A DNA stretch of 7,767 nt from Paramicrosporidium saccamoebae KSL3 (lineage: Eukaryota; Fungi; Cryptomycota): the NCBI GenBank assembly GCA_002794465.1, contig MTSL01000119.1, positions 1-7,767 of the forward strand. Direction: 5' to 3'. Shown one piece after another: positions 1 to 7,767 of this stretch; position 1 is the first letter of the stretch, and the number at the start of each line of letters is the position of its first letter. Position numbers and translations under genes: made by a program. The notes under the pieces are model-generated. The model worked only from the letters and a program-made list of their open reading frames with translations, made no database searches and was not told the origin of the DNA.

Positions 1-39
1 GCAAAGCGATCCACTCTAGCACACAAATACGTCTCACTG

Positions 40-149
40 TTCTCAAATACCCAGCAACTCAGTCTTTTCTGAACTAATCAACCCTCTACGTCAAATACCC
101 GACTAATCAATCCTCTACCTCTACCTCTACCTCTACCTCTACGTCACAC
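40..149 (-). repeat. Repeat family A, rearranged cluster of about 2.5 copies
   Basis: ttctcaaatacccagc (40-55), actaatcaaccctctacgtca (73-93) and actaatcaatc(ctctac)5gtcacac (102-149) match the reverse complement of 4537-4574 (ttctcaaatacccagctaatcaatcctctacgtcacac). Confidence 0.9.
113..142. repeat. Hexamer microsatellite (CTCTAC)5 inside a repeat A copy
   Basis: Five perfect tandem ctctac units read directly from the sequence. Confidence 0.97.
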
Positions 150-377
150 TTGAGCATTCGAGCTACACATTTCACGCATGAATACAACCAGGAGCCTCTG
201 GCACCGGTACTCGACTTGATACAAACAGAACTATACGGAAAGCAAAATCTCAATCATGCTATCTATAGCAAACTAAAAATAGGTTTATCAGAATAAGGTA
301 ATCATGTTAGGGCATCAATTGAGCCAAGTATAAGCTTGTTACGCAGAAATTGGGATAAAAATCGTTTCTTGTTGGAC

Positions 378-2114
378 TTAATCCAAGTCTTCGTCGCTCG
401 ACTCTTCTTCCTCGGAAGACATGGCACCGGCAGCCGCAGTTGCGGCCGCTGCGGCGGGAGTAGGTCCTCCTCCTACGGTGGGCTTCTTGGTGCCCGAACC
501 GCCCGTGCTAGGCTTCTTGCGCTTAGCAGAGGCTCCAGTTTCGCCCAGAATGGCAGCCAAGGAGGTGATTCCCTTGCATTCCATGACATATCTTTGCAGC
601 TGTCGAAGCGTGCGCACATTCAGACTCTCAATGTCAAGCTCAATGACGTCCGAGTCGCCTTGGGCCTCGAGTGCCATGCCAGCCTGGATAATTTCCACCA
701 CTCGTCCAAGCTTTTCGGGGGGAAGATTGTTGACCTCAATGCTGAGCTGGCGCTTCTCCTCAAAGGACATGGGCCTCGACAAAAACTCTTCCTCTGTGAT
801 GGGCGCCGAACCGGGTTTGCTCGCGGGACGGGATGCCTTTTTTGGTCGCGGAGTCGCCCCTGCCGTCATGGAGGATGACCTGTTCCTGCGCTTCATCAGC
901 AGAGTATTCAGTTCCTGCTGAAGAGCTTGGATCTGCCGGTTAATTTCCAAAATCTTTTCAGAATCCGAGTCGACATCGTCGTAGCTGGATCCTGCATAGC
1001 CCCATTGAGCCGGTTTCTGTGCCCATTTAGAGTCGAACAGCTTTTCAAAGGCGCGACAAAGGGACACTACATCCGAATCAGGAGCATTGTAACTGTAGCA
1101 GTTGGAGAAGATGAGACGGACGTCACCCTCAAACTGCTCAGCAGTTGTGTATTGGCCTGCTTCCAGCTTACGACGGACTGTAGAGAGATCCATCGGCTGC
1201 TTGATCACGTCGTAATAGTCGGGAATGCCGAGTTTGGCGGGATCCACTGGCTCTAGGAACGGCCACGCAATAGCCAAATGTGCCTTTTTGGTCAGCTCTT
1301 TCAGGACGTTGTTGCAGAAGGCGAGTTCGGGGTTGCTCGTTGAACGCGCCCGGCTACGAGGAGTGCTGGACCCCACAGCATTTGCAAGGCGATGGGGAGC
1401 ATGAGACTCGCGACGAGCACGAGTGGCAGAGAGGGGAGTCGAGGTGCTTCGTTTTTTGTCATCCTCGCCAGGTAGTGGCAAAGAGGTGGGCAACTTTCCA
1501 ATGGCCGTGTTGAAATATTTTTCCAGGGAATGTCCCATTTTGGAGACTTGGCTGTCGGGATGGTTGTATGAGAAGCAGTTTTGGAGCATAAGACGAATAT
1601 CGGCTATAAACGAGTCGGCATCGGCATACTCTCCCGCCTCCAGCTTTTTGGAGACAAGACTAAGATCCATGGGGTTTTTGATAATGTCAAAATAATCGGG
1701 AATATTCAAGGCCAAGGGGTCTACTGGCGCTTGGAAGGGAGGAGACTGAGGATGTCGCTTCAAGCCCTTAAGGACTGTGGCACAATAACGAAGTTGCTCC
1801 TTGACCAGAGCAGGCGACTTGTCCTCGGCACCTGCATCGACCGCAGAAGCCTCGACGCCGGCAGCAGATTCGGTGTTTTCAGCAGCAGTCTCAAGAACAG
1901 CAACCCCAGCAGCAGACTGCTCCGAGGTCTCTGGAACCGAGTTAGACTCTACCACTACAGTCTCTACTATTGTCGTCACCGTCTCCTGAACTAGTTCTGC
2001 TTCGAGTACTGGCTGGACGTCCTCTTTTTGAGGAAGCGGCTTGGTGGGAATCTCTGTATGAACGTCAGTATCGTTCAGGTTGTTGACTTCTTCCTCCGTG
2101 TGCATAGTTAGCAT
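378..2114 (-). CDS. BDF1: BET-family double-bromodomain protein (Bdf1/BRD2-4-like), 578 aa, no intron in the CDS
   Basis: Acidic N-terminus; BD1 at about aa 107-209 (PPF..PVDP..IPDYFDIIKNPMDL..NCFSYN); BD2 at about aa 263-368 (WPFLEPVD..PDYYDVIKQPMDL..NCYSYN); coiled-coil segment; ET domain (MSFEEKRQLS..LPPEKLGRVVEII..IELDIESL..TLRQL); C-terminal SEED-like tail SSEEEESSDEDLD. The start could be Met4 (2105). Confidence 0.95.
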   Translation of the reverse strand: MLTMHTEEEVNNLNDTDVHTEIPTKPLPQKEDVQPVLEAELVQETVTTIVETVVVESNSVPETSEQSAAGVAVLETAAENTESAAGVEASAVDAGAEDKSPALVKEQLRYCATVLKGLKRHPQSPPFQAPVDPLALNIPDYFDIIKNPMDLSLVSKKLEAGEYADADSFIADIRLMLQNCFSYNHPDSQVSKMGHSLEKYFNTAIGKLPTSLPLPGEDDKKRSTSTPLSATRARRESHAPHRLANAVGSSTPRSRARSTSNPELAFCNNVLKELTKKAHLAIAWPFLEPVDPAKLGIPDYYDVIKQPMDLSTVRRKLEAGQYTTAEQFEGDVRLIFSNCYSYNAPDSDVVSLCRAFEKLFDSKWAQKPAQWGYAGSSYDDVDSDSEKILEINRQIQALQQELNTLLMKRRNRSSSMTAGATPRPKKASRPASKPGSAPITEEEFLSRPMSFEEKRQLSIEVNNLPPEKLGRVVEIIQAGMALEAQGDSDVIELDIESLNVRTLRQLQRYVMECKGITSLAAILGETGASAKRKKPSTGGSGTKKPTVGGGPTPAAAAATAAAGAMSSEEEESSDEDLD

Positions 2115-2147
2115 GACAAATTTGGTTTCTGTCTACTCGATAGTCGC

Positions 2148-2270
2148 CTACGCAGGGTTAGTATCTGGAAACCACCCCGGTCTCGAGACTAATGATGAGG
2201 CCTCCTCCGACCTCGGAGTATCCATCCATCATAAGCAGCCACAGGTCTCGAGGGCCGGTTCGACTATTAC
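2148..2270 (-). other. Predicted 123-nt structured intron in the BET 5' UTR
   Basis: Donor AAG|GTAATA at 2270, perfect branch point TACTAAC at 2163-2157, acceptor TAG at 2150-2148, 33 nt before the ATG. The upstream exon has no ATG. Nested inverted repeats lie inside. The donor choice is less certain than the acceptor. Confidence 0.6.
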
Positions 2271-2376
2271 CTTAATTGAGACGGATTAAAGCGAGAAATC
2301 AAACGAGAAGAGTGAGGAGTGCTGACAAAGTCTCCTCTCTACTGGTTGTACGCCGAGAAATGCGCAGCGGACGCCC

Positions 2377-2390
2377 TATAAAGCCAATCG
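2377..2390. promoter_or_regulatory. CCAAT (NF-Y-type) box with adjacent TATA-like element, candidate BET promoter
   Basis: agccaatcg (2382-2390) fits the RRCCAATSR consensus and tataaa lies at 2377-2382, about 110 nt upstream of the predicted UTR-intron donor. Confidence 0.4.
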
Positions 2391-2403
2391 ACCCCTGGTC
2401 AAT

Positions 2404-3630
2404 TTATGTATTCCCGCCAAAATTTGCTTTTGCTATATGCTGGAGGTAGCTTACGGTGAGGCGTTGGGCTGCAGACCGCAGCGACTCGCTCCCCAAAGCT
2501 ACTTTTGGACTATCGGGGTTTCGGGAAAGATATTCCTGGAACCTGCTGGTGGTTAGCTGATAAAATTAAAAAAATCAAACCTTGTGAGAAGCTCTTGTTG
2601 AGCGATGCTCGTGATCCATTTGGATTCCTGAATATTCCTCCTGTCAGGGATTGTCTAAAGTAACTTGGACCAGGTTCTTGGGATGGAGTACTTGGAGAGA
2701 CTCTATGTGCTCTTGGATGGCCTCCCAGGCCTCGGAAATGCCTCTTCCATTCCTCCCCGAAATAGGCAGCACCTGACAGGTCAGTCGACACAGATAGCAG
2801 TACTTTTTTCGACTTACCACCAAGTGCATATTTCATGGCGCTTTTGTATTCAAATAAAGTCTGATTTGCGCCTTTGTCCAAGGGGTCATCAGCCTTGTTG
2901 ACGAGGATAATATCAGCCATTTCTGTGATGCCCTTTTTCAAGCCCTACCAAATTGGCTAAGGAGGATGGGTACCTGCAGCTCGTCGCCGATCCCAGGTGC
3001 AACGAGGAGGATGAACATGTCCACCAGGTCCATGACTGCCAACTCGGACTGTCCCACTCCCACCGTCTCGACCACGACAATGTCGTATCCCGCATCTAGC
3101 TAATCATGGCCACATTTACAGCATGTACATTCACAGAGACGGATTGTATCAAATGTGGAAACGACAACTCCGCCTGAATCGCCATGATTTGGAGATGACC
3201 TGATATATGCGTGTTCCTCGAGCGACAGATATGGCATTCGGGTCTTATCGCCGAGAATTGAGCCGCCTGACCGCACCGAGGACGGATCCACCGTCTATAA
3301 TCAATGGTCATCAGCCACAGCTACGAGGACGGCGAGATGTTTTTGTTGGTCATTAACGAGGAACATGCCGAATCGCTCAATCAAGGTGGACTTTCCAACA
3401 CCGGGTGCGCCTGAGAATCCCAATCTAATTGCCGGCTTGTGGGTGCCCTTTTCTGCAAGAGCGGAGAATAGGTCAGAGACGAGCAGCTGGTCGGCGGGCA
3501 GACGCGACTCGAGGAGGGTAATGGCTCTCGACAGGACATGACGGTCGCCGTTCTGGATCGACTTTGCCATCATTGGGATGTCGCCCGTGCTAAGGGAGGT
3601 GATTTGTCGGACTATCGACTTGCATAGCAT
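2404..3630 (-). CDS. MMAA: MMAA/MeaB (ArgK-family) GTPase chaperone of methylmalonyl-CoA mutase, about 342 aa, 7 exons
   Basis: Exons 3630-3325, 3294-3129, 3095-2974, 2944-2804, 2772-2692, 2654-2581 and 2542-2404 sum to 1029 nt in one open frame. Motifs: [11 protein letters not shown]-loop [86 protein letters not shown]. The N-terminus [15 protein letters not shown] resembles a mitochondrial presequence. The last acceptor is a CAGCAG tandem (2546 or 2543). Confidence 0.93.
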
Positions 3631-3632
3631 GA

Positions 3633-4456
3633 ATGTACCGACAAGGGTGTCGCATGATAGAATATTTGTATGGACACCAGCCGGTCATGGCGGCCTTACA
3701 GGCGCAAGTCCGACGTGCATATCAACTGCTAATCTACGAGGGCAGTCCTGCGTCTCAGTAGCATTCCGTTCAGTCTTAATGTGTAGACAGAAGATTGAGG
3801 AAATTGTGCAGCTGGCAAGGTCGCGGTCCATACGGATGCAATTCACAACCAAAACGCAGTTGGACGACCTGTGTCAGCAACGGCCGCACCAGAATGTCGC
3901 CCTTCAGGTTGAGCCACTCTCCCTGCCCACCGTGGAATCTCCCTCTGGCCGTCTGTCGCTTTTGCTAGCGGACATTGTGGATCCACAGAACATTGGCTCC
4001 ATCATTAGGTCGGCGGCATTCTTTGGCGTGCATAACGTTTATTTGACAAAGGGCTGTGCAGGCCAGAGTCCAACAGTCTCCAAGGCAAGTGCGGGGTCGT
4101 TGGAGTGGTTCACACACCAGATGGCGTGGTGTCGACGGGGGGCTGCGTTTGTACAAAAGGCTGAAGAAGCAGGCTATCGGGTGGTAGCTACTGGGATGGG
4201 TGTGAATGCAGGGTCGGTGTGGGAAATGTCGCAGGACGATCGACCAATCCTGCTGGTTCTTGGAAACGAAGGAGCCGGAATCCCCAGAGGGATTTTGGAA
4301 AAATGCAAGGAAACGATCAAAATTCCTGATATTGGCTCGAGAATGGACTCGTTAAATGTCGGAGTGGCGGCTGCCGTGATGGTTGCCCATCTTTGCCGTT
4401 TCAATACTGTGAGACAAGACCCGCTGCCCGTTAGGGTCCCCAATCCGACATGCTGA
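3633..4456 (+). CDS. MRM1: SpoU/SPOUT rRNA 2'-O-methyltransferase, MRM1/RlmB-like, about 264 aa, 2 exons
   Basis: Exon 1 (3633 or 3654 to 3757) encodes MIEYLYGHQPVMAAL, the conserved N-terminal motif of RlmB/MRM1. Intron 3758-3786 (29 nt, gtagca..cttaat..gtgtag) joins it to the frame with DPQNIGSIIRSAAFFG, SKASAG, LVLGNEGAGI and DSLNVGVAAAV. The family call is firm; the MRM1 orthology and the exact start are less so. Confidence 0.85.
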
Positions 4457-4536
4457 TAGCGATTATATTTAGAAAGGGTACGCTCTTTAATAGACTTTTT
4501 ATGAGATGATATATATACAAATGATACGGGATTACG

Positions 4537-4680
4537 GTGTGACGTAGAGGATTGATTAGCTGGGTATTTGAGAATGGTTCCCTAGGGTGGAGAAGGGATA
4601 ATAAGAACAATCGATGAAGTGTGACGTAGAAGACTGATTAGTTGGGTGTTTGGAGAAGAGATAATCAGAACAATCGATGA
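4537..4680 (+). repeat. Repeat family A, tandem pair
   Basis: gtgtgacgtagaggattgattagctgggtatttgagaa (4537-4574) and gtgtgacgtagaagactgattagttgggtgtttggagaa (4619-4657) differ by 4 substitutions and 1 indel. Both units end in ggagaagRgataatMagaacaatcgatga (4589-4617, 4652-4680). The second unit lacks about 19 nt. Confidence 0.93.
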
Positions 4681-4725
4681 GGGATAATGATATCTTTGTC
4701 ATTTGAGAACTACTACGTGATTTTT

Positions 4726-4826
4726 GAGACTATAAAATGACTTACAAATTGATATTAAGTGAGTTCCCTTGTCTCCCAAATAAATAATAGTGACAAAGCC
4801 CGTGGTGTTATCCCCACTACGCGACA
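4726..4826 (+). repeat. Repeat family B, degenerate copy B1
   Basis: gagactataaaa (4726-4737) and ccgtggtgttatccccactacgcgaca (4800-4826) recur in the same order at 4877-4888 and 4936-4962; the second block is 26/27 identical. Confidence 0.85.
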
Positions 4827-4876
4827 GAAGGATGATGAGGTCTATATCTTTACCATTTTATGATTATGTTATTTGT

Positions 4877-4963
4877 GAGACTATAAAAGGGTCCGTTGGA
4901 TTGACTGAAGAAATTCTCTTCTCACCTAAACTGGGCCGTGGTATTATCCCCACTACGCGACAA
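4877..4963 (+). repeat. Repeat family B, copy B2
   Basis: 4911-4963 is 52/53 identical to the reverse complement of 7715-7767. Confidence 0.95.
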
Positions 4964-5082
4964 TAGGCGGATGCTGCTTAACCGACCCCGTTGGTTAGCG
5001 ATACTACGCCTCTGCTAAAGGCGCCATTATAGATAACCGCTCTCAATAGTCTCACTTGTCACTCAAACGCCAACAATTACAA

Positions 5083-6985
5083 TTACGTTTGCCGTGCTAC
5101 GCTATAATGACTACAAAAATCGACTCTGGACATGAATTGGCTCTCATGGGTGATGCGATCCACTTCCTTCATCAAGTCAAATGTAATCTCGGGGGTGACC
5201 ACCGAGTCACGTTGGTATCCGGGATGGTTCTGTACAAAATTCCTCATCCAGGATGCGGGCGTCAGTAGCTCTCCCGAAGCACGCATCCGGATCAGGGTCA
5301 GATATTCGGACAATCTGCCTCGGGTTGTCTCGTCCACACTAACAGAGTCCAAATATTGATCCACAAGTGTCGCCAGTCCAACAAATTTGTCGCTTCCATT
5401 GATAATGTCATTGACGGTCAGTTCGGTGAGACATTCATCCGCACATCCCTCTCGATACGGATCACAGGGAAAATGAAACCTCTGACTTTTCAGAGAATCC
5501 CGACGATGGGCCCGCTGCATGTTCTCATCCACCAAACTAAGGGGCATGTAAAAGTTTAGATTGTAAACAAGAATAATTCTGGTCAGCAACACGATAAAAA
5601 CGGAAAAGGCGGCATTTTCAAACTCTGTGGGCTGCACCTCCATCGGACGAAACTCGACACGCCATCCGATGGAATCATCTTCAGCTGGGGGCGGCTTGAA
5701 CCGCATTGTCTGCCAATTGGTAGATTGAATGTTCTCAAAATGATCGGAAGAGTTGTTGTCTTGATCGACAAGCTCGGAAAAGATGACCAAGGGATCTCTG
5801 ATGAACAGCCAGGCAAAATGCTTGGCTAGCAAGTCATCAAATCCCGCCTCAATGAGACGATCGTAGGTTTTGCCGTTGTAGGGGACATTGAGATCATTGT
5901 ACTGGGGAAGCAATCTGGGATCCATGGCGATGAATCGACTGATTGATGCATACCGTGACTTTGGAATATATGCACTGCCTGACACGCGCTCTTTGTTGGT
6001 GCGATCATCCACCGACGCTGAAATGACGTTCCATCTACAATCAACATCGGCCAAGTATCCTCTGTAAATGGGAGTTGAAGCAGTCAGTGCCATCTACCAA
6101 TTAGCTGCAATTATTGCCAAGTACCACTATGGGACACATGACGGCGAGCTGATCATACAAATGACGAGCCTCCAGGATATCTCGAGCCTGGAATGTAATT
6201 TGCAGACAACAGCAGCCCATTCCAAATCCCATTGCATCCATATAAATTGTATCTCGCTTGGTGTTGTTCTGCGTCGAACCCGGAAATGCGGACGTTGTCT
6301 CTGAATCAACAACCATTTTGGTGTTCGTGTCCCGGAACAATGGTAGTTCAATACAAACCTTTTCGCCACGTCTCTCTCGGATGTTTCTGGTGATCGTCTT
6401 GAATCGTGGATGTTTGTTAATGAATTCGTCGGGGAAGAATAGGGATCGCGATGCCTCGTTGGTTAATGTTGTGGCCAGGGGATCGGCAAATGCATCTTTG
6501 CATCCAAGTCGCGGGAAATTACCAATTGCCAAGAGACTTTCGTTGGGACGGAGGTGCAGCTCGGCCTGGCGTCTGCGGAGGGTCATGTCCCGTTCTACGC
6601 AAAGCAGATCCTTGACATCGTGGCGGTAGGGTTTTGCTGGAGTCGCCTCCAACATATACCGTCCATATTCTGGATGCCAAGTTGCTGTAAAACTCTCCAT
6701 CGCCTCGGTGCAACATTCTGGTAGCGAGTGCGACTTTTCCGCCATCTCCGTCTTTAGCTGTTCCAACATTTCCTCCGCCCGTACCGTCACATGGCAGCTC
6801 TTGTCGTTGCCAAATCGCACCACAATATACTCCACTTCATCTCCCCACTTTAGATAATCATGTGTTCGGTCTTTTAGCCGTTCAAACACTCGAATCAGCT
6901 GTTCCACGCCGCCTGCCCGAACCTTTTCGGCCAAGGGCTTCGCATCCTCCCAATTTAACGGAGTCCCACAAGAGAGTAAACCCAT
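5083..6985 (-). CDS. GSH1: Glutamate-cysteine ligase catalytic subunit, about 623 aa, 2 exons
   Basis: MGLLSCGTPLNW, LKWGDEVEY, WHPEYGRYMLEATP, YMDAMGFGMGCCCLQITFQ, CRWNVISASVDDRT, ENIQSTNWQTMRFKPPP, GWRVEFRPMEVQ. Intron 6124-6094 (31 nt, gtactt..gctaat..ggtag) joins CPIV to MALTAS in phase 0. Confidence 0.97.
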
Positions 6986-7077
6986 GGGCGGATCTGATTG
7001 GCTGGGGGTGCATGTTTGACGCGCAACCCAAGCTGGTCGGTGCCAATTGGTTCCGCCGGGCTTGGTAAGAGAGTGGA
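6986..7077. promoter_or_regulatory. 92-bp divergent GSH1/PRA1 promoter with CCAAT boxes
   Basis: Space between two head-to-head ATGs. tgattggct (6995-7003) is agccaatca on the minus strand; the palindrome ccaattgg (7043-7050) carries CCAAT on both strands. Confidence 0.5.
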
Positions 7078-7612
7078 ATGGAGGGACTACAGGAATTTAG
7101 ACAGGAGAAGATGGCCAACATGAGGCCTTGGATGACTGAATTTCTGAACCGGGAACAATTCTCCACTCCCGATGGCTATTCTATGGCGCAGAATCGCATC
7201 ACGGCTAATCTGCGCTACTTCCAGTCCAACTATCTGGTCGTGGGTCTGGTGCTGTACCTCTATTGCGTGTAATTTCATTATGGGTGGGCTAACTTTTGCA
7301 GCTTTCAGCATATAATCCTGGCGGCCATGATGACTGCTCTGGTAGTCTCGTACATCTACACTGCCAATCTCCCCGAGTCGTACAGCGCCCAAGTCGGTGG
7401 AATGACTATAACCAAGAGGCTCCTCTATGTGGGGCTTGTTGTCGTGGGGATTTTGATGTTGATATTCACAAACGTTGGATCAGCCTTTTTCTGGCTGCTT
7501 GGGGTAACCAGCTTGATTGTTGGAGCGCATGCTGCCTTGCACGAGGTTTGGGTTTTGGGTCAACCTAATGTTGTAGGTGAGCGTTGAAACGGATTTTGGC
7601 CAGCATGCGTGA
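7078..7612 (+). CDS. PRA1: PRA1 family (prenylated Rab acceptor 1 / Yip3), about 156 aa, 3 exons
   Basis: Exons 7078-7268, 7302-7545 and 7577-7612 total 471 nt. Introns 7269-7301 (33 nt, gctaac branch) and 7546-7576 (31 nt, cctaat branch). Motifs RPWxxEF, RITANLRYFQSNY, long hydrophobic segments and HAALHE, ending VSVETDFGQHA. Confidence 0.88.
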
Positions 7613-7656
7613 CCACGGCATGTCAGACGTGACATAGCATGACGCGACATGACATG

Positions 7657-7662
7657 AATAAA
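7657..7662 (+). terminator. Candidate polyadenylation signal of PRA1
   Basis: Canonical AATAAA 44 nt after the predicted stop codon. Confidence 0.5.
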
Positions 7663-7714
7663 GTCGTCTTTTGTAGCTTGGATAATGTTTGGGGCCAAAG
7701 AGCAATCTATTTAT

Positions 7715-7767
7715 TTGTCGCGTAGTGGGGATAATACCACGGCCCAGTTTAGGCGAGAAGAGAATTT
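7715..7767 (-). repeat. Repeat family B, copy B3 (runs off the window edge)
   Basis: Reverse complement aaattctcttctcgcctaaactgggccgtggtattatccccactacgcgacaa equals 4911-4963 except for one G/A difference. Confidence 0.95.

Follow-up and report, generated by a model that had tools for sequence, protein, structure and literature searches.

The closest described counterparts of the repeat reported here are MITEs, or miniature inverted-repeat transposable elements, of the Stowaway/Tourist type, which are non-coding, shorter than 500 bp and sharply bounded, with inverted termini and copies in gene-proximal spacers, and the solo long terminal repeats (LTRs) of yeast Ty elements (delta, sigma), which have TG...CA ends with few inverted bases, span a few hundred bp and lie between the genes of a compact fungal genome. 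Small composite intergenic elements with distinct end modules and variable internal units are known from another domain of life, in which the pneumococcal BOX element is built as boxA-(boxB)n-boxC and the terminal inverted repeats of the Correia elements of Neisseria are long and accompanied by a TA duplication; these elements often lie between convergent genes in compact genomes. Short conserved cores past poly(A) signals are found in the Reb1 or Rap1 roadblock terminators downstream of yeast genes, and cohesin is found at convergent genes in fission yeast. We analyzed a stretch of 7,767 nt from Paramicrosporidium saccamoebae, hereafter the window, which comprises bases 1-7767 of MTSL01000119.1 (15,760 nt) in assembly GCA_002794465.1 and contains five genes, BET, MMAA, MRM1, GSH1, and PRA1, the identities of which were confirmed by Pfam. 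Two repeats, A and B, lie behind gene 3' ends in this stretch and had been read, in an original prediction made from the sequence, as a gene-polar family of 3'-end cis-elements. We found that A and B belong together as opposite, inverted ends of a single non-coding composite repeat, ~230-430 bp long, which is probably a MITE-like, lineage-specific dispersed repeat in dispensable spacers. The composite shares with MITEs and Ty solo LTRs the features named above and, as with MITEs, is lineage-specific and breaks short-read assembly. Its likeness to BOX and Correia elements is one of build and is an analogy only, with no sequence relationship. In common with roadblock terminators and cohesin sites, it has short conserved cores past poly(A) signals and one copy between convergent genes.

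The repeats were compared by self-BLAST and nhmmer profile scans, their termini were aligned with their own flanks, and the boundaries of the element were drawn where similarity between copies stops. Repeat A is present as two plus-strand copies (4537-4618 and 4619-4680) and two minus-strand cores (149-91 and 93-40). Its best pair, a 31-nt match between 4541-4571 and 121-91, is 90% identical (self-BLAST E = 1.8e-4), and the four A cores have nhmmer E-values of 2e-8 to 2e-13, with profile E-values overall down to 3e-19. Repeat B is present at 4681-4830 and 4831-4966, with its G-rich strand on the minus strand, and at 7715-7767 on the plus strand, where it runs off the window; the segments 4911-4963 and 7715-7767 are identical at 52/53 positions (self-BLAST E = 1.2e-15). 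Both repeats are real and far beyond chance, and all of the coordinates first reported for them held in the self-BLAST and nhmmer comparisons. We also considered A and B as one family, which was rejected given that local alignments in both orientations were no better than shuffles and only the 10-nt termini match. The chance that their shared orientation relative to genes is a coincidence had been put at 1 in 8; since A and B are not similar overall, they count as two families and this figure becomes 1 in 4.

The element has the layout 5'-TGTGACGTAG-(A unit, ~81 nt, x1-2)-(B unit, ~135-150 nt, x1-2)-CTACGCGACA-3', and its parts within the window are as follows.

4538..4962, plus strand (A to B): central copy, 425 bp, fully assembled, in the order A1-A2-B1-B2, in the middle of the MRM1/GSH1 convergent spacer
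4538..4547, plus strand: A terminus, TGTGACGTAG, aligned with unrelated flanks
4538..4618, plus strand: A unit 1, ~81 nt, with the core TGTGACGTAGAGGATTGATTAGCTGGGTATTTGAGAA and then the tail ...CCCTAGGGTGGAGAAGGGATAATAAGAACAATCGATGAA
4619..4680, plus strand: A unit 2, an internal copy of A1 in tandem, ~20 nt shorter
4681..4830, minus strand: B unit 1, inner and older-looking, ~65% identical to B2, with the 27-nt core and the TTTTATAGTCTCA block kept; its ends are weakly self-complementary (fold z = -1.8)
4831..4962, minus strand: B unit 2, the outer unit, which bears the element terminus
4953..4962, minus strand: B terminus, TGTCGCGTAG on the minus strand, inverted relative to the A terminus, 8/10 matches
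1..148, minus strand: left copy, A side only, cut by the contig end, with its A terminus toward the BET 3' end
112..142, no strand assigned: microsatellite (CCTCTA)5, grown out of the TAGAGG of the left copy's A terminus
7716..7767, minus strand (composite): right copy, only its B terminus in the window, with the B G-rich strand on plus and facing the PRA1 3' end

Unique sequence flanks the central copy on both sides, with 81 nt toward MRM1 and 120 nt toward GSH1. The start of the A terminus recurs on the minus strand of the left copy, from 148 to 139, in unit A2 (4620), and beyond the window from contig position 8007 downward (TGTGACGTAA). Every A end begins TGTGACGTA(G/A), and the sequences that precede it (...gattacgg, ...gctcaag, and ...catgacat) are unrelated; every B end begins TGTCGCGTAG, after ...ccgcctat and ...ctatttat; the boundaries are sharp against unrelated flanks at three loci. 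With the register fixed independently, from the comparison of copies and flanks, the terminal inverted repeat of TGTGACGTAG and TGTCGCGTAG has 8/10 matches, for which the binomial P(>=8/10) is 4e-4 in that fixed register and ~2e-3 if a few registers are allowed. The 27-nt B core TGTCGCGTAGTGGGGATAAYACCACGG starts at the B terminus and is kept at 26-27 of 27 positions in all three B copies, and the motif TGACGTA is present in all five A units. The left copy consists of A cores at 148-91 and 93-40 and a partial tail at 39-1 (CTAGAGTGGA).

The window starts at the contig end, at position 1, and is followed directly by a scaffold gap of 144 N (contig 7768-7911), such that both assembly breaks of the stretch fall inside repeat copies. 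The assembly was built from Illumina reads trimmed to 80 nt, and breaks of this kind are expected for a repeat assembled from reads of that length (PMC5701793); by themselves, they are no proof of more than three copies. Past the gap, contig 7912-8007 contains a B/A junction and one inverted A unit, reading ...AAAATAACATTATCCTTCATCGATTGTTCTGATTATCCCTTCTCCATACTAGGGAACTATTTCCAAAAGCCATGCTAATCAGTTTTTTACGTCACA in the orientation of the window, followed by unique sequence. This inverted unit is 81% identical to the central A1 over 89 nt, and the junction is the same as that in the central spacer (90% over the 49 nt that span it). The right copy is, thus, B...gap...A, the mirror image of the central A-A-B-B, and measures ~292 bp with the estimated gap. 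A and B are joined at the same junction in two copies and, therefore, were propagated together as one unit. At least three copies are present on this contig, at the BET/contig end, in the MRM1/GSH1 spacer, and in the PRA1/ERCC4 spacer, with unrelated flanks and in both orientations, and what had been counted as four independent cases are really terminal pieces of three copies of one composite element.

The comparison with relatives covered nine loci (~100 kb) from uncultured organisms in Logan, JGI, and ENA assemblies. The gene order ERCC4-PRA1-GSH1-SpoU-MeaB-BET is kept in the relatives, with identities to the window of 64-66% for GSH1 and 63-75% for BET. No similarity to A or B was found in the syntenic relatives (loci L001-L006, L008, and L009). 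The GSH1/SpoU spacer measures 110-147 nt in the relatives versus 626 nt here, or 201 nt here once the 425-nt element is subtracted, and the PRA1-to-ERCC4 spacer measures 172 nt in L009 versus 510-535 nt here. Promoter motifs of the same spacers served as a positive control and are conserved in the relatives. A 28-nt block, TTGGCGGGAAnAnATAAATTGACCAGGG, is conserved upstream of BET and is invariant in L002 and L005, in which coding DNA is ~75-80% identical, and L005, L006, and L009 retain, upstream of GSH1, GCGCGTCAAACAT together with a CCAAT box in the arrangement GCGCGTCAAACAT...CCAATCA, which is the reverse complement of the window sequence. The absence of the element from the relatives is meaningful given that true cis-motifs of the same spacers are conserved there. 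The element is a lineage-specific insertion, not an inherited signal, and it arrived after the split from the sampled relatives. A (TAGAGG)-like match downstream of BET in L001/L002 was discarded as low-complexity sequence, probably inside the next gene. Pattern scans with the A core and the B core in metagenome_contigs and genome_contigs, and with the B core also in viral_contigs, returned 0 matches, the genome evidently lying outside these collections.

The MITE-like reading agrees with the size and non-coding nature of the element, given that open reading frames (ORFs) in the 425-bp central copy reach 59 aa at most, and with the presence of terminal inverted repeats, although these are short and the ends are unrelated beyond 10 nt. 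Under this reading, the composite would be a present or former non-autonomous mobile element of the MITE type, mobilized in trans, and its insertions would be tolerated only in spacers, ~76% of the genome being genic. The internal A and B units would expand by tandem duplication, and the conserved termini would reflect the needs of the mobilizing enzyme rather than those of RNA polymerase II (Pol II).

Several observations weigh against such an origin. We searched for target-site duplications of 2-10 bp, with a shift of 0-2 nt allowed, and found none at either of the two complete copies; the 5-mers that flank these copies (TACGG/ATAGG and GACAT/AATAA) agree at 2/5 positions each, which is the chance level. 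Decay of a former duplication is possible, the A units being 19% diverged. We use the label MITE-like, not MITE, because a target-site duplication is a defining MITE feature and this one was tested and was absent. Unlike the ends of MITEs, those of the composite match in inverted form over only 10 nt (8/10 positions), and the rest of A and B is not detectably related. The interior also differs from that of MITEs in consisting of variable numbers of two tandem units, no autonomous partner is known, and the element cannot be assigned to a superfamily. In its published description, the P. saccamoebae genome has 7.28 Mb, 3750 genes, and 0.53% repeats, mostly simple, and transposons are not mentioned (PMC5701793). 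Our literature search likewise returned no description of the A/B element, nor any of P. saccamoebae transposons. The copies have diverged unevenly, with 52/53 identity (98%) at the B terminus versus 81% in the A unit, and this pattern fits gene conversion, selection on the cores, or assembly bleed-through at the gap better than it fits one clean recent transposition; in bleed-through, the assembler could have extended the contig end with reads from another copy. Finally, only three copies were seen on the one contig covered, and mobility itself is something that we infer.

The same evidence bears on two other accounts of how the repeat arose. A solo LTR, left after LTR-LTR recombination of an LTR retrotransposon, would explain the TG...CA termini with their short inverted repeat (5'-TGTGACG ... 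CGCGACA-3'), as well as the size of 230-430 bp and an intergenic place like that of the yeast delta and sigma solo LTRs. We consider this origin distinctly unlikely in view of the missing 4-6 bp duplication at either complete copy, where yeast Ty solo LTRs have one of 5 bp, and of the modular interior, a variable number of internal tandem units being unusual for LTRs; furthermore, no retrotransposon has been reported for the P. saccamoebae genome, and no full-length retroelement is known to go with the element. The second account holds that the copies are non-mobile, minisatellite-like arrays of local origin that ectopic recombination or gene conversion then carried from spacer to spacer. The tandem duplication of A and B units, the growth of (CCTCTA)5 from one terminus, the lack of a target-site duplication, the mosaic identity between copies (98% versus 81%), and the location of all three copies within 8 kb on one contig are all consistent with it. 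The sharp boundaries, and an A/B junction shared by copies that differ in flanks and orientation, are more easily explained by insertion of a discrete unit, and we regard the array account as unlikely, though worth keeping in mind.

The apparent link of the repeats to gene ends has a simpler basis than a polar signal. Measured from the sequence and the ORF list, the distances from stop codon to repeat are 228 nt for BET, 80 nt for MRM1, and 119 nt for GSH1, exactly as first reported, and the 102 nt given for PRA1 applies only if a weak 31-nt terminal intron is spliced (stop 7610-7612), the distance being 127 nt if it is not (stop 7585-7587). An AATAAA behind PRA1 at 7657-7662 precedes B by 52-53 nt, in line with the 52 nt proposed for it. 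Directly before this AATAAA, a 15-nt unit (GACGCGACATGACAT-like) occurs twice in the PRA1 3' region at 7626-7657. In 4/4 cases within the window, the sense strand of the adjacent gene is the G-rich one, also as claimed. Beyond the gap, contig 8007 is the last position of the inverted A unit, which leaves 115 nt to the ATG at 8123; the unit is antisense to ERCC4, such that orientation relative to the adjacent gene is not constant (A unit at 7912-8007, upstream of ERCC4). The ORF that starts at this ATG encodes 102 aa and shares 69% identity with residues 6-94 of ERCC4/XPF from a relative; in the deposited models, this first ERCC4/XPF exon stands as a 102-aa protein of its own. Each of the four cases within the window is an entry from the 3' side of a gene, and the fifth terminus is entered from the 5' side of ERCC4. 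The polarity was apparent because inverted termini read alike, 5' to 3', when entered from either flank. Relative to genes, the orientation of the whole element is not fixed, given that the A end points toward BET, MRM1, and ERCC4 and the B end toward GSH1 and PRA1. The coincidence in orientation needs no biological cause, and there is no evidence for a termination signal.

Distribution was counted over 13.6 kb of MTSL01000119.1, which contain ten junctions and ten gene 3' ends, from an assembly of 221 scaffolds. The element is present at 4/10 gene 3' ends and in 1/3 confirmed convergent spacers, that is, not at most 3' ends or convergent junctions. The junctions, with absence established by profile scan, are listed below.

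BET 3'/contig end: with element; convergent with Ist1 by synteny with relatives
MRM1/GSH1: with element; convergent
PRA1 to ERCC4: with element; tandem
MMAA to BET: without element; tandem
Noc2 to Asp: without element; tandem
ERCC4/SecE: without element; convergent, ~68 nt
RRM/Asp: without element; convergent, 69 nt
Three divergent promoters: without element; only ~100-125 nt long

Within the window, the profile scans found no further copy of A or B in the two divergent promoters or at the MMAA-BET junction, which bears out the absence first noted there. Each copy sits at about the middle of its spacer and widens it. The hypergeometric probability that three insertions would all miss the three divergent junctions is 35/120 = 0.29. 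Among the three candidates put forward in the original prediction, a small non-autonomous element fits best, but the further proposal that it targets terminators is not supported (P ~0.29). Nor is the proposed gene-polar 3'-end family itself supported, in view of the antisense A end upstream of ERCC4, the 6/10 3' ends that lack the element, and its absence from relatives.

We weighed against these counts the possibility that the element acts as a functional module that marks a boundary between genes, for instance as an insulator, a Pol II terminator of the roadblock kind, an origin, or a site for cohesin. A sequence-specific protein would bind the two outward-facing conserved cores of such a module, the copies of which could nonetheless have been spread by mobility. 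In keeping with this idea, the terminal cores are far better kept (26-27/27 in the B core) than the interiors (~65% between B1 and B2), TGACGTA is shared by all five A units, and at least one end points toward a 3' end in 3/3 copies, with the central copy between convergent genes; a symmetric, outward-facing design would suit a two-sided barrier. We nevertheless judge a boundary function improbable. The element is absent at 6/10 3' ends, including those of the tightest convergent pairs, Asp/RRM (69 nt) and SecE/ERCC4 (~68 nt), which weighs against a barrier because a barrier would be most needed there. One of its ends also lies in the ERCC4 promoter region, and it is absent from all syntenic relatives, in which cis-motifs of the same spacers are conserved. 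The repeat content of 0.53% (~39 kb, mostly simple) leaves room for well under 100 copies of the element per 3750 genes (PMC5701793). Unlike the cores of roadblock terminators and cohesin sites, those described here lie within a 230-430-bp repeat that is absent from most 3' ends and from the tightest convergent pairs, is found also upstream of a promoter, is not conserved in relatives, and has no known binding factor.

An intermediate possibility is that the composite is a mobile boundary cassette, which would spread in the manner of a MITE and would have been co-opted in the very gene-dense genome of this parasitic fungus, its two outward-facing cores TGTGACGTAG... and TGTCGCGTAGTGGGGATAAYACCACGG binding a host protein. 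We consider this very unlikely; the sole hint of it is that the cores are better conserved than the interiors. That such a cassette would stop or insulate transcription entering from either side is, in our view, a similarly slim prospect.

Some motifs in the units recall small RNA genes, either a C/D-box small nucleolar RNA (snoRNA) or a tRNA-derived RNA polymerase III (Pol III) unit. The plus strand at 4831-4907 bears AUGAUGA ... CUGA ~76 nt apart, and TCGCGTAGTGG at the B terminus agrees with the A-box consensus of Pol III at 10/11 positions, with a TTTT ~75 nt downstream. The composite element gave no Rfam match, no tRNA, and no significant RNA fold. There was no relevant Rfam match for the units at E <= 1, and ARAGORN found no credible tRNA in either default or relaxed mode. 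The boxes are not accompanied by a terminal stem, neither the C/D-like nor the A-box-like motif is kept in the sister unit B1, and no covariance-model or tRNA match with conserved boxes and a terminal stem was obtained. For B2, fold z-scores ranged from +0.4 to +0.9, and the A units, folded as plus strands, scored +1.1 to +1.6; nothing similar is present in the relatives. It is, thus, extremely unlikely that the units are small RNA genes.

Several features of the gene models in this region were observed alongside the repeat. The BET ORF is 100% identical to a P. saccamoebae protein. A protein search with a GSH1 exon had a best match of 66% and did not list the GSH1 protein that is on record for this contig; a missing 100% match in such a search is, hence, no sign that a genome is absent. 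The deposited models fuse MeaB/MMAA and BET into one 827-aa protein (PF03308 + Bromodomain + BET), and PRA1 (window ~7110-7612) and Sec61-gamma/SecE (~2648-2922 of L007, the MTSL01000119.1 locus) are without annotation in the deposit; SecE was confirmed by Pfam (E = 4e-14). Very short spliceosomal introns of ~29-49 nt are present at window positions 6094-6142, 7271-7303, and ~2942-2970; their branch sites resemble CTAAC or CTAAT and lie near the 3' splice site, and the single 49-nt GSH1 intron reproduces the length of the deposited 617-aa product. RNA-seq has been published for P. saccamoebae (PMC5701793). The RRM-protein gene contains, at 2173-2289 of L007, three tandem 39-nt units, the second and third being 82% and 67% identical to the first; these presumably form a coding repeat of 13 aa, the unit length being a multiple of 3.

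The spacers that served as controls also showed details of their own. Upstream of BET, the block AAATTTTGGCGGGAATACATAAATTGACCAGGGGTC lies on the minus strand at window 2383-2432, ~270-320 nt before the BET ATG at 2114, and contains TTTGGCGGGAA, which we take to be a textbook E2F site; the block is probably a cell-cycle promoter element for BET. The GSH1-PRA1 divergent promoter (6995-7065) contains GATTGGCT, the CCAAT box for GSH1, and ATGTTTGACGCGCAA, and a 38-nt imperfect palindrome at 7028-7065, centered on CCAATTGG, adjoins the GSH1 CCAAT-box motif. At the end of one JGI metagenome contig (L005, 1-120), two tandem 60-nt units that are 88% identical were examined as possible relatives of the element and were found to be unrelated in sequence to A or B; their spacer lies upstream of the Asp protease gene. 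The relatives may have spacer repeats of their own that break assemblies.

In summary, small dispersed repeats such as this composite are ordinary features, but none had previously been described in this genome. The gene-polar signal vanished on reading 240 bases past the window, which illustrates how the inverted termini of one element can mimic polarity, and stretches that end at assembly breaks tend to show one repeat end only. A discrete dispersed element with inverted ends would be a small addition to a genome described as almost repeat-free. It could help explain where the short-read assembly breaks and could serve as a marker of recent genome dynamics near the root of Microsporidia.

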